Assembly: GCA_026770705.1 (NCBI GenBank)
Contig: JANJGN010000071.1
Coordinates: forward strand, 620,001 to 684,000
Length of the DNA stretch: 64,000 bases
Source: Isurus oxyrinchus
Lineage: Eukaryota
Direction: 5' to 3'
Part shown: positions 8,061 to 56,070 of the stretch, piece after piece
How positions within the stretch are numbered: position 1 is the stretch's first letter
Layout of the letters: every line of letters begins with the position of its first letter
Notes under the pieces: model-generated
What the model was told of the DNA's origin: nothing
Databases searched by the model: none
What the model saw: the letters and a program-made list of their open reading frames with translations, nothing else
Program-made: the position numbers and the translations under genes

Positions 8061-8438
8061 TTGGACTGTCACAAGAGTGGAAAGGCAACACTCCACGAGA
8101 GGTGACAGCGCAGGAAGGTTCGTGTGTACAGATTCCATGTCATTACAGTTACTCATCACATTTGGTAAAGAAAACACATGTCGGAATCTGGTATATGAGG
8201 AGGTACATACAGAACAAATGGTCTAAATGGTCTATAGCCTTTCACGCCAAGCATCACAATCGCGAGTTACCACGGTTCCACCATCGGACCCGGCTGTCTG
8301 GAGACGTGAAAGATGGCAACTGTTCCCTGATTATAAACAACATCAGACAGGAAGATGCAGGACCTTATTTTTTCAGAATAGAATTTGACATTGCTCCGAG
8401 CCATAACTATTACCCTGAAACCCAGCTTCACGTTTCTG
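8061..8438 (+). CDS. Gene A V-set Ig exon V1 (GC donor)
   Basis: Acceptor ctctccccag|TTGGA; open 378-nt frame VGLSQEWKGNTPREVTAQEGSCVQIPC...YFFRIEF...QLHVS; donor reads GCAAGT rather than GTAAGT. Confidence 0.85.
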
Positions 8439-53700: not shown

Positions 53701-56070
53701 AGGGTATAAGGTGGATATTGTGAATTATTTTATCTTTCTGAACTGGTGCAGTAAAGTTTATTTTTGTTTGTTTAAAAGCCATGGAATCTTGTAGCTCTAT
53801 TCTCTTCGCAAGCGTCTTAAATCTCAAACCTCGTCTACTTGAAACAAAATATTATTGGTTCCTAACTGTAAATTATCAAAAAAAATTGGGTGTCTGTTCC
53901 TCCATCAGCAACTCTTCAGAATCCTGCTGAAGTCACGGATATTTCAGAAGGACAGGGAACAAGAAGTTTCTGGTATCAGCGTTTTGTGTGGGGCCCAGTT
54001 CAGTTTGAACAAATAAACAACACCATCTTTGAAAGTCATGAACCCACCACAGCGGCACCTCCGACACATGCAGAGCTCAGGCGAGAGGCGCTTTGTTAGT
54101 GTGTTTCACAGGGTCTGCTGGAGTAGGGTCAGTGCTGAGAGGGTCTGCTCAAGGATCATAACAACCTGCACTTGCACCTTCCAAGTAATAAGATTTTGTA
54201 AATGTATTCATTCATGGGATGTGGGCGTCGCTGCCAAGGCCAGCATTTGCTGCCCATCTCTAATGTCCCGTGACATAATCTCTGTAGCAGAGTAGAGACA
54301 ATCATGATCACTCAGGATATTTGACATCTATCCACATGAGCAGCTTAGGCTTCCTTCTCTCTTTCAGTTATCTTACTCCCTTATTGAAGTTTCTAGCATG
54401 GTGAGAACTGGATGGTTTGCTCGGACATTTCAGAGGAACCACGTTGCTATGAGTCTGGAGTCACATGTAGGCCAGACCAGATATAGACGGCAGATTTCCT
54501 TCCCTAAAGGCCATTAGTGAACCAGATGGGTGTGTATGACAATCGATGATAGTTTCATGGTCTCCATTACTGAGACTAACTCCCATTAGTGTAAACAGAG
54601 TGAACAGTTTTCCATTGATCCCACCTTTCCCGTTCTCTCCGGTATTTTACACACTATTGCTCGATAATTTGATTCTGCCAAGGACCCCTTGGAAAATCAT
54701 GGACCCCAGTTAGACAACCAATGGAATAAGGAATCTCTTTGGATCCTCATTGTCTAAGGAATCTCTATGGATTCTCATTGTCTAAGGAATCTCTTTGGAT
54801 CCTCATTGTCTAAGGAATCTCTTTGGATCCTCATTGTCTAAGGGATTATTTCTGATCCAAACCCCATATTGTTGTATTGTTGATTCCGATGCAGCATTGT
54901 AGACTGACTTGTCCCCAAGCTCAGCACTGACCCTACTCCAGCAGACACTGTGAAACACACTAACAAAGTGCCTCTAGCCTGAGCTCTGCATGTGTCGGAG
55001 TTGCCGCTGTGGTGGGTTCATGACTTTCAAAGATGCTGTTGTCATTTTTTTTGTTCAAACTGAACTGGGCCCCACATGAAATGCTGCTACCAGAAACATC
55101 TTGTTCCCTGTCCTTCTGAAACATCTGTGATTCAGCAGGATTCTGAAGATTTGCTGACAAGGGTCTTAAATTGTCTGATTGTTGAATGATACAACACAGG
55201 AGGAGCTTGTTTGATCCATTGTGCATGTGCTGACTCTTTCCCAATTCCTCTCCAGCACCTTTCGCACATCCCTGCAAATTTCCCTTCAAGTATTTATCCA
55301 GTTCCCCTTCTGAAAGTTCCTGTTGAATCTGCTTCCACCGCCCTTTCAGGCAGTGAGTCAATGGTCTCTCTCTGAGCTGCAAAGTGCTAATATTCTGTGA
55401 AATTTAAACTCTGCAGCAGGTCAGAGACACTCATGATAACTCAGAATATTTGACACCTTTACACACGGACAGCTTTACCTTCCTTCTCTCTTTCAGTTAT
55501 CTTGCTCCCTTATTGAAGTATCTAGCAAGGTGAGAATGGACAGGAAGTGTGACACTGAACAGCCTGTCTATTCTAGGAGCTGCTGTGCTGTCTTCATGGG
55601 AAATTTTGAATAAAGGCAGCAAAGGACACAAATTTCAGACCATTGCTATCGGAGACCTCGCAGCAGGATAGGCTTCACCCCCCAGTTTTTATCCCTGCTT
55701 CTCTACTCAAGTCATCAATCCCCATCGCTCACTTACCAACGTCTGAAAGCACCTGAATTTTAAGTTTCTGCTCTCGCTGCTACAAACCTGCCTATCCCTG
55801 TACACTCCTCCAGCCCCTACAACCCTCCAAGGCCTCTGCTCTCCTCCAATTCTGCTCTCAGACAGGGATTCAGTGTATATCAGTGAGCACAGGGGTGATG
55901 GGTGAATGGGAAATGGTGTGAGTTTGTACACTGGGTCACTCCTAAATCGGTTCCCAATTAGAGTTCAATAAGAATGATCTTTTACAAAGACTATTAACCA
56001 AAAGTCTGTCCGAGCTGATGATGATATTACCTTGGAGAAGTGACAGGAGGAAGTAAGATTTCCCGATCAT
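40211..56070 (-). CDS. Gene B: inhibitory Siglec-family receptor (V + 8 intact C2, TM, ITIM + ITSM), ~1034-1065 aa. Exons 56070-56031, 52629-52264, 51404-51108, [50888-50796], 50133-49852, 49190-48909, 48159-47878, 47070-46789, 45986-45705, 44722-44441, 43650-43369, 42248-42152, 41457-41376, 40459-40211.
   Basis: Exon phases are mutually compatible and the frame stays open from leader MIGKSYFLLSLLQVGLS through V-set YFFRIE and TM WTVGLFTAGIMLSVFLAGIFIFICV to LLYANI (ITIM) and TEYTQI (ITSM) and the stop. Confidence 0.88.
40635..41162 (+). repeat. 33-bp SINE-derived minisatellite (~16 copies) in the last intron of gene B
   Basis: (CAGTGCAGCACTCCCTCAGTACTGACCCTCTGA)n. Confidence 0.95.
41376..41457 (-). 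CDS. Gene B membrane-proximal cytoplasmic exon
   Basis: ttattgcag|G AGA AAG...CAC CAG|gtacag; RKTAMEDRGSGTNYIALTLRSLSVKHQ; phase 2-0. Confidence 0.8.
42152..42248 (-). CDS. Gene B transmembrane exon (uncharged)
   Basis: tttttacag|GT AGA GAC...GTG AGA AA|gtaagt; RDSSKWTVGLFTAGIMLSVFLAGIFIFICVRK. Confidence 0.9.
43066..43132 (-). pseudogene. Truncated ninth copy of the repeat C2 exon
   Basis: Only DYQSVAENEHGAVEGFITITVE remains; Cys changed to Ser; intact donor but no polypyrimidine acceptor. Confidence 0.8.
43369..50133 (-). repeat. Tandem array of seven intact 282-bp C2-set Ig exons with ~0.95-1.25-kb period
   Basis: DAP.NLSI.SLDMINASSINIIEGNSAVIICSVESFPASNLTWRHLNVPMNRTSSNNELWLVIPHVTSRDTGDYQCVAENEHGAVEGFITITVE repeated; introns are also homologous and CA-rich. 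Confidence 0.95.
50796..50888 (-). CDS. Internally deleted repeat C2 exon (93 nt, in frame, both splice sites intact)
   Basis: DAPQNLSFTSLDMINASSINIIEG|FITITVE; 189 nt lost between two GAGGGG motifs. Confidence 0.6.
51108..51404 (-). CDS. Gene B first C2-set exon
   Basis: 297 nt, differs from gene A C2 by one residue (DVP vs DVR). Confidence 0.92.
51657..51785 (+). mobile_element. Short insertion flanked by a ~19-bp imperfect direct repeat
   Basis: CAGACCAGAGATTGGAGTT (51638-51656) / CAGACCAGAGGTTTGAGTT (51786-51804); gene A has the empty site (~12800-12815); a related element lies inverted at 16160-16250. Confidence 0.7.
52264..52629 (-). CDS. Gene B V-set Ig exon
   Basis: tctccacag|TTGGA...TTTCTG|gtaagt; 366 nt; CVQIPC, GDCSL, YFFRIE. 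Confidence 0.92.
53903..55157. repeat. ~240-bp inverted repeat (53903-54138 / 54920-55157) in the leader-V intron of gene B
   Basis: The two arms give near-identical ORF-track peptides (..FESHEPTTAA.PTHAELR..ALC) on opposite strands. Confidence 0.9.
54728..54843. repeat. 28-bp tandem repeat x4
   Basis: TAAGGAATCTCTTTGGATCCTCATTGTC. Confidence 0.9.
56031..56070 (-). CDS. Gene B leader exon (coding part; exon 56112-56031)
   Basis: ctctttcag|...GGACG ATG ATC GGG AAA TCT TAC TTC CTC CTG TCA CTT CTC CAA G|gtaata; joins the V exon as MIGKSYFLLSLLQVGLS-QEW. Confidence 0.85.

Follow-up and report, generated by a model that had tools for sequence, protein, structure and literature searches.

Siglec-like receptor genes of activating and inhibitory type beside hepcidin in Isurus oxyrinchus, members of a large elasmobranch family

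Siglec-like genes at the hepcidin locus

We analysed a stretch of 64,000 nt from the shark Isurus oxyrinchus (contig JANJGN010000071.1, positions 620,001-684,000 of the forward strand), which is referred to below as the window. Self-comparison and exon searches identified three genes of one Siglec-like family in it, here called A, B and C, together with a hepcidin-like gene. Genes A and B are convergent and lie tail-to-tail with the minus-strand hepcidin gene in the middle; they are further members of a large, already annotated elasmobranch Siglec-like family and not a homogenised pair.

8.0-15.1 kb (approximate), plus strand, gene A (self-comparison, exon searches)
22080-26509 (about 22.1-26.5 kb), minus strand, hepcidin-like gene (Pfam, translations)
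56.07-40.21 kb, minus strand, gene B (self-comparison, exon searches)
62.8-60.4 kb, minus strand, gene C, 3' exons only, with the Ig exons outside the window

The initial annotation of this DNA had described paired activating and inhibitory receptors placed around hepcidin and linked to the HAMP locus. Both the tail-to-tail placement and the linkage were confirmed, as the minus-strand gene that separates A and B matches the Pfam hepcidin family (PF06446, E 1.4e-6, 29 bits, narrowly above the cut-off of 27).

Gene A combines two V-set exons with an arginine-bearing transmembrane exon

The exons of gene A were found as follows, with exon borders marked by a slash here and below.

8061-8438, plus strand, V-set exon 1 (V1): open frame, YFFRIE Arg, acceptor ctctccccag in phase 1, GC donor G/GCAAGT
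11952-12320, plus strand, V-set exon 2 (V2): donor G/GTAAGT, Pfam match, extra Cys in the BC loop
13049-13345, plus strand, C2-set exon: Pfam C2-set_2 at 2.6e-8, borders fixed by RNA joints on both sides
13669-13820, plus strand, decayed Ig (I-set) remnant: 5' half gone, frameshift and stop
14935-15074, plus strand, terminal exon: transmembrane (TM) segment with Arg, 12-residue tail free of Tyr, TAA stop

V1 matches Pfam V-set at 1.5e-12 and Ig_CD22 at 1.3e-9, and the interval between V1 and V2 is filled with long interspersed nuclear element (LINE) fragments and a 37-bp satellite. The remnant at 13669-13820 is 89-94% identical to the tandem Ig units of gene B. The last exon, entered in phase 1 after the AG at 14933-34, encodes DSGGEILHVILILGIRAVIFLVAVVITIAGVCVW with the tail ERQTVKGNRQTV and a stop, and its translation agrees with the Arg TM and 12-residue Tyr-free tail described initially. 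The single V exon given to gene A in that description has to be replaced by two, at 8061-8438 and 11952-12320.

Scanning 1-7842 for a hydrophobic ATG exon with a phase-1 donor gave no convincing leader for gene A, and blastn at word size 7 with the leader of gene B recovered only that gene's own copy in the window, so the leader of gene A would lie outside it. The domain order could be read from relatives. An extra BC-loop Cys occurs in 20 of 26 later V domains versus 4 of 109 first V domains (the four most likely include 5'-truncated models); gene A V2 has it, and V1 and the V domain of gene B (B-V) do not. In the database proteins P0169, P0162, P0165 and P0010 a V1-type domain is followed by a V2-type domain with the junction HVS/VGLSQEWKG. 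Based on this cysteine as a mark of later V domains and on the order in these four proteins, the product of gene A is most likely leader-V1-V2-C2-TM(Arg).

Gene B encodes a long receptor with a tyrosine-motif tail

Gene B runs from a leader exon to a stop codon within the window.

56070-56031, minus strand, leader exon: MIGKSYFLLSLLQ, donor G/GTAATA
52629-52264, minus strand, V-set exon: Pfam V-set 6.5e-13, Ig_CD22 8.9e-12
51404-51108, minus strand, C2-set exon (Pfam, exon comparison)
50888-43066, minus strand, tandem Ig-exon array: Pfam Ig_3 and I-set, two intronic gaps
50888-50796, minus strand, internally deleted first Ig copy of 93 nt: in-frame deletion, splice sites intact
50133-49852, 49190-48909, 48159-47878, 47070-46789, 45986-45705, 44722-44441 and 43650-43369, minus strand, seven intact 282-nt phase 1-1 Ig exons
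43130-43066, minus strand, last Ig copy: 3' fragment with donor
42248-42152, minus strand, TM exon: neutral TM, RRDSSKWTVGLFTAGIMLSVFLAGIFIFICVRK
41457-41376, minus strand, cytoplasmic exon 1: contains TNYIAL, conserved relative to gene C, matches P0182
40459-40214, minus strand, last coding exon: immunoreceptor tyrosine-based inhibitory motif (ITIM) LLYANI, immunoreceptor tyrosine-based switch motif (ITSM) TEYTQI, stop

The neutral TM, ITIM and ITSM ascribed to this gene at the outset were thus recovered in the exons at 42248-42152 and 40459-40214. Several parts have counterparts among shark gene models: the leader is also present in P0001-P0008, the V domain is 93% identical to that of P0002, the C2 domain is 100% identical to that of P0197, and the tail is 80% identical to that of P0010. 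The B-like models P0182 and P0189, with 2 and 5 tandem Ig domains, match gene B in design and in junction residues. The first intron of gene B measures 3.4 kb.

The cytoplasmic motif TNYIAL is a third tyrosine motif, ITSM-like, and occurs likewise in P0182 of great white shark.

Both genes are Siglec-like

All searches were carried out exon by exon, and structure was predicted for P0004, a great white shark homologue of gene A that is 93-95% identical to its V2, C2 and TM exons. When V2 was compared with all PDB sequences, the first 17 matches by E-value were all Siglecs, with Siglec-5 the best at 7e-16; scores were nearly equal (52-61 bits) for Siglec-5, -7, -8, CD33, MAG and sialoadhesin and showed no preference among them. 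The motif YFFRIE, found in V1, V2 and B-V, aligns with YFFRVE of Siglec-5, which holds the canonical sialic-acid-binding Arg on strand F, and the same motif occurs in Siglec-8. The C2 exon aligns with domain 2 of MAG (2e-5), where the cysteines of SCxxxxxC coincide (VSCTFNTTC versus VSCMVPDNC in MAG). The Siglec cysteine pattern is present too: the V exons contain SCVQIPC and DCSLII, and C2 contains VSCTFNTTC, whose cysteines would provide the B-E intrasheet disulfide and the disulfide between the V domain and domain 2. Across 42 aligned relatives the Arg, its flanking aromatics, the A-strand Trp and the five relevant Cys were invariant or at least 90% conserved.

The AlphaFold model of P0004 has a mean predicted local distance difference test (pLDDT) score of 85.7 and a TM helix at 230-263. 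Used as a Foldseek query, it retrieved CD33, MAG, Siglec-10 and CD22 at ranks 1-20 by E-value, with CD33 on top (3.3e-19, target-normalised template-modelling score 0.74) and Siglec-10 highest by that score (0.80); Siglec-5 came at ranks 36-41 with a root-mean-square deviation of 3.8. The V-C2 two-domain Siglec fold was thus found in the model that stands in for gene A. Together with the canonical Arg, the cysteine pattern and the PDB matches, these data bear out the Siglec-like nature initially assigned to both genes. Because A and B retain the Arg and the cysteines, they probably bind sialylated glycans, and because their predicted ligand loops differ, they probably do so without a common single ligand.

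In P0029 of Chiloscyllium punctatum, a relative of the Arg-TM type, Lys replaces the canonical Arg (YYFKVEF), which may represent a ligand-binding change in an activating member.

A and B share exons and introns but not their V lineages

Searches within the window by tblastn and blastn found three V-set exons (8061-8438 and 11952-12320 on the plus strand, 52629-52264 on the minus strand) and two C2 exons (13049-13345, plus; 51404-51108, minus). Nucleotide identity was 91.9% for V1/B-V, 92.5% for V2/B-V and 98.3% for C2, where five mismatches change a single residue (R/P at 13184). The introns are homologous as well, with 7842-8060 corresponding to 52848-52630 and 11897-13377 to 52684-51076. 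Alignment and both search types therefore uphold the similar V exons, the C2 exons one residue apart and the homologous introns noted before.

At the protein level, A-V2 and B-V are 86% identical and V1 and B-V 74%. The first 97 nt of A-V2 and B-V are identical, and the differences between the V domains of A and B are concentrated from BC to C', including the CC' loop, and near strand G. The nearest relatives are found in great white shark and are closer than A and B are to each other (97% for A-V2, 93% for B-V). In the V tree, A-V2, V1 and B-V fell into three separate groups: the V2 group (support 95) contains Carcharodon, Cetorhinus, Mustelus, Scyliorhinus and Chiloscyllium sequences from three shark orders, whose tails include the Arg and the ITIM type, and a V1-type clade with first V domains of Carcharodon and Cetorhinus has a support of 96. 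The great white shark protein P0162 is an inhibitory model that carries the V1-V2-C2 set of gene A and is formally a better counterpart of A than B is. The ectodomains also differ in size, with 3 Ig domains in A versus 9-10 in B.

The initial annotation had compared the two genes to the SIGLEC5/14 and SIGLEC11/16 pairs. One half of that comparison stood, since opposite signalling modules are present (LLYANI and TEYTQI in B, the Arg TM and ERQTVKGNRQTV in A). The other half, near-identical binding domains, fell on the V identities, the separate V groups and the existence of P0162. Judged by sequence, A and B do not form a pair of one-to-one partners.

Signs of patchy gene conversion that spares the V loops

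Identity between A and B formed a mosaic. Within V it was 98% at the 5' end and 86% elsewhere; the intron showed 96% over its first 170 nt and again over its last 140 nt, but 77% in the middle; and C2 stood at 98%. Fisher tests on the intron parts gave p=4e-5 and p=5e-9. The longest stretch of full identity measured 115 nt, a length reached by 0 of 2000 permutations (maximum 86). Synonymous divergence (dS) was 0.77 in loop codons but 0.077 for the framework and 0.053 for C2, and the ratio of nonsynonymous to synonymous rates (omega) between V2 and B-V was 0.3, or 0.14 in the framework, indicating purifying selection. Over V1, V2 and B-V, 97 informative sites split 40/29/28 among the three groupings and lay in 43 runs versus 64.7 expected (p<=1e-4). 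In trees, C2 domains grouped by taxon with tail types mixed, while V lineages crossed shark orders. The mosaic identity, the dS contrast, the runs test and the clustering of C2 by taxon point to conversion at the exon and sub-exon level across the family, sparing the V loops. Of the likeness drawn earlier to mammalian pairs homogenised by gene conversion, the patchy conversion was retained, as seen in the mosaic and in C2; the homogenised A/B pair was not, because the V loops are distinct.

Presumed RNA contigs contain joints of both receptor types

Contigs of four public runs (X1, X2, X6 and X7; two organism labels, three studies), which are presumed RNA and yield short k-mer contigs, were placed on 11850-15350. 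A GT..AG joint from 12320 to 13049, linking V2 to C2, was found in all four runs. A second, from 13345 to 14935, linking C2 to TM(Arg), was found in runs X1, X2 and X6, with a short arm of only 27-30 nt. Splicing of exon 14935-15074 to the Ig exons, on which the initial proposal depended, is thus indicated by a joint to a C2 exon in three runs, with paralogues as a possible source. Contig 26 of run X7 follows 12165-12319 with 1 mismatch, over a stretch in which eight sites plus indels separate A-V2 from B-V, and runs on into C2; it is therefore of the A-V2 type. Contigs on the TM exon and 3' untranslated region of gene A were about 99% identical to it, and those on the intron upstream about 98-99%. 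The junction residues HVS/DFTDKP and TVQ/DSGGEILHV are identical in P0004, P0175 and P0177.

Loose ends of contigs showed leader-V, Ig-Ig and Ig-B-TM junctions, which indicated that B-type transcripts were present too. Among them, one has the letters of the gene B leader (MIGKSYFLLSLLQ exon) joined to the start of a V exon, and another has AGAGACTCCAG after the end of an Ig exon. Contigs and joints of A type and B type co-occurred in the same presumed RNA runs, to which near-identical paralogues may contribute.

The two designs recur across sharks

NCBI shark gene models show both the V-V-C2-TM(Arg) design and the B-like design. Two Carcharodon models named 'Siglec-12', P0175 and P0177, contain a partial V1-V2-C2-DSGGEILHV...Arg-TM arrangement, and A-V2 is 96.7% identical to P0177. 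In Scyliorhinus canicula, P0005 ('Siglec-14 isoform X2') and P0008 ('Siglec-13') read leader-V-C2-Arg-TM, and in P0014 (S. torazame) and P0029 (Chiloscyllium) the cassette sits on longer ectodomains. Altogether the terminal cassette of gene A also ends P0004, P0175, P0177, P0005, P0008, P0014, P0029 and P0110.

One search returned 114 named elasmobranch relatives, and a representative search returned 287 proteins at E<=1e-10; NCBI names for the family include Siglec-5/8/10/12/13/14-like, CD33-like and MAG-like. With residues 300-346 of P0177 (the Arg-TM cassette) as query, 4 proteins were found, all Siglec-like and from sharks. A Protein Atlas search with the TM exon had a best score of 0.83 and returned no named families, and a search of the available literature found no paper on shark Siglec pairs. 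The genes are thus already in public automatic annotation, and what is new is their interpretation and locus context.

Weighing the explanations

We consider it probable that A and B are part of a large elasmobranch Siglec-like cluster beside hepcidin, with A of activating and B of inhibitory type, in which the duality of tails is family-wide. Gene A would most likely encode an activating-type receptor consisting of a leader (outside the window), V1, V2, C2 and a TM that buries an Arg and is followed by hardly any tail, and such a receptor would signal solely through a separate adaptor chain with an ITAM (immunoreceptor tyrosine-based activation motif). Gene B would encode a long inhibitory-type receptor, leader-V-C2-7 or 8 Ig-TM-ITIM/ITSM, predicted to recruit SH2 phosphatases. 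The resemblance between A and B would reflect shared family descent plus patchy conversion, which makes C2, the V framework and the edges of the introns alike and leaves the V loops distinct. Activating/inhibitory duality would then be a property of the whole family, as in KIR, LILR and CD33-related Siglecs, with no private pairing of A and B.

Several observations weigh against this reading. The window contains no leader exon for gene A, V1 combines a GC donor with a relaxed-looking substitution pattern (omega about 0.8-0.9 versus B-V, on small counts), and three great white shark models of the Arg type have no signal peptide. At 13184, 13224 and 13281 the majority of C2 contigs agree with gene B, and since near-identical paralogues exist, the joints could come from them; the contigs are of the short k-mer type, from runs presumed to be RNA. 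The V and C2 trees are built on about 100-120 columns by a quick search.

Some of these points would suit the alternative that gene A is a transcribed pseudogene or fragment, a duplicated B-like piece from which leader and stalk were lost and which yields no protein at the cell surface. The missing leader in 1-7842, the LINE reverse-transcriptase debris between V1 and V2, the GC donor and high omega of V1, the decayed Ig exon at 13669-13820 and the start of the great white shark Arg-type models at an internal Met all agree with it. Against decay, the V1, V2, C2 and TM frames are open with key residues retained, V2 is under purifying selection relative to B-V, and V2, C2 and TM are correctly spliced in presumed RNA. 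The cassette is moreover conserved, Scyliorhinus has complete leader-V-C2-TM(Arg) models that contain it, and P0169 has a leader ahead of the V1-V2-C2 set. A leader more than 8 kb upstream is plausible, given that the first intron of gene B already spans 3.4 kb and that inserted repeats may have widened that of gene A. We regard a pseudogene as unlikely. The two other alternatives we found harder to credit. A pair in the strict sense of SIGLEC5/14 or SIGLEC11/16, in which A is the dedicated activating partner and conversion keeps its ligand identity with B, would explain the opposite tails, the near-identity of C2 and of the start of V2 and B-V, the homologous introns, the convergent position as chromosomal neighbours and the presence of both transcript types in the same runs. 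It is very improbable in view of the V identities of only 86% and 74% with changes at CC' and G-strand positions, the closer great white shark counterparts of A-V2 and B-V in separate V clades, the unequal number of Ig domains, and an inhibitory great white shark model with the V1-V2-C2 set of A. Receptors that are Siglec-like in fold alone, binding protein or other non-sialylated ligands as do some Siglec relatives and other V-set immune receptors, would be in keeping with the highly variable loops and with the few family V domains that have Lys or another residue for Arg, such as the Arg-TM type P0029. We hold this quite improbable, as the Arg, aromatics and Trp are at least 90% conserved across the 42 aligned members, V1, V2 and B-V all retain YFFRIE, and the best sequence and fold matches are Siglec structures with bound sialosides.

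Comparison with known paired receptors and with the mammalian hepcidin region

In humans, SIGLEC5/SIGLEC14 and SIGLEC11/SIGLEC16 are paired receptors (PMC4042635, PMC5701461). The shark genes resemble them in the Siglec-type V-set and C2 domains, in their position as neighbours, in the evidence for conversion, and in that one member has an ITIM plus an ITIM-like motif and the other a basic TM residue with a short tail. They depart from them in that the V domains are 74-86% identical instead of near-identical, conversion is patchy (C2, V framework, intron edges) and leaves differences in the V loops, the V domains of A are likely two in number and the Ig domains of B 9-10, and both tail types occur on many paralogues with no exclusive pairing. 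Compared with mammalian CD33-related Siglecs, the shark tail LxYAxI...TEYxxI resembles LxYAxL...TEYSEI/V, and the V-C2 fold and the organisation as a fast-evolving multigene cluster with activating members are also shared. By contrast, the shark locus is linked to HAMP and so corresponds to the mammalian MAG region, not to the CD33-related cluster, and includes multi-V and long tandem-Ig architectures, which are not known from CD33-related Siglecs. KIR, LILR and CEACAM likewise show, at the level of the family, two kinds of tail on related ectodomains, together with shuffling of exons and gene conversion; the shark family differs from them by its Siglec-type ectodomain with the canonical Arg. 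Another case of activating and inhibitory Ig receptors is that of the Xenopus CEACAM pairs (PMC5112662).

A Siglec gene in the hepcidin locus recalls the human MAG/CD22 region at 19q13.1, although the shark genes are multi-copy and immune-type with ITIM/ITSM or Arg-TM tails and there is no single conserved MAG/CD22 orthologue. CD22 lies in this HAMP/USF2/MAG region on human chromosome 19q13.1 as well. The variable CD33-related group is, in our own reading, mostly a mammalian matter. One review counts Siglec-1, CD22 (Siglec-2), MAG (Siglec-4) and Siglec-15 as ancient and the CD33-related Siglecs as the variable remainder (PMC9630641, citing Bornhofft 2018), and HAMP, USF2 and MAG are found together near FFAR genes in mammals (PMC4453067). 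The shark and ray family challenges the view of a largely mammalian group, having CD33-like tails and an Arg-TM cassette conserved in three galeomorph shark orders. These two features, with the concerted evolution of C2, the distinct V lineages and the hepcidin neighbour, suggest a much greater age for the activating/inhibitory Siglec design than has been assumed, or else two separate origins. We propose tentatively, and rate as unlikely, that immune-type Siglecs with a CD33-related-style ITIM and TEY tail, along with an Arg-TM counterpart, were present at an ancestral HAMP-linked locus before the split of cartilaginous and bony vertebrates. If this is true, the design would go back to the ancestor of jawed vertebrates instead of having arisen in mammals or tetrapods, and the CD33-related cluster of mammals would derive from the HAMP-linked locus. 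The shark family is also a natural setting in which to study how conversion can homogenise a framework and leave ligand loops different.

Gene C, hepcidin, assembly gaps and repeats

The remaining features of the window are as follows.

62815-60441, minus strand, inhibitory-type 3' exons of gene C: TM 62815-62719, cytoplasmic exon 1 61997-61916, last exon 60689-60441
26411-26509 (near), minus strand, hepcidin signal peptide exon (translation)
22083-22253, minus strand, hepcidin mature peptide exon with 8 Cys after RQKR (translation)

The last exon of gene C holds LLYANP and TEYAQI. LLYANP has Pro at +3 and hence is a non-canonical ITIM, reported as the membrane-distal motif, while TEYAQI is retained; LLYANPQVF is common to several shark models. 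In the position of TNYIAL in gene B, gene C has TSDIAL (61916-61997). The TM exons of B and C with their flanks (42107-42503 and 62674-63070) are 98.5% identical over 397 nt versus 76-89% in adjoining blocks and resemble a tract of recent conversion between these inhibitory genes.

The mature hepcidin, RMSRQRPCRFCCHCCNWREPNETCGICCRY, has eight Cys, and its loop contains an N-E-T sequon. Outside the known exons, 150 stop-free segments of 60 aa or more were screened; their matches were confined to LINE reverse transcriptase and endonuclease, with no other host gene among them, though short exons would escape a screen of this kind. The same screen found no synteny marker besides hepcidin in the window.

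Seven runs of N occur in the window. Five, at 32119-36298, are intergenic, more than 3.9 kb past the stop codon of gene B, and the other two are at 44297-44432 and 47735-47869; the one at 47735-47869 falls within the range of the initial annotation yet is absent from the program-made list. Each of the latter two begins 8 bases after a GTGAGTTA donor that is intact and belongs to a complete Ig exon of 282 nt and phase 1-1, so both gaps are intronic and the frame is unbroken; a break of the gene B frame by these gaps was rejected on this ground. The repeat-unit lengths across them, 1072 and 1089, are in line with those of other units (943-1264). Further copies could be hidden in the gaps, in which case the number of tandem Ig exons in gene B may be under-counted. 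Where the gaps at 47735 and 44297 directly follow GTGAGTTA, other units carry a CA-rich microsatellite.

A family of 33-bp tandem repeats (ACAGTGCAGCACTCCCTCAGTACTGACCCTC...) is dispersed over 13371-13487, 15806-16157, 22656-22960, 24984-25221, 33039-33325 and 40641-41162, with one copy right behind the C2 exon of gene A. Presumed RNA contigs stack on this repeat, with a summed depth above 100,000 in two runs.

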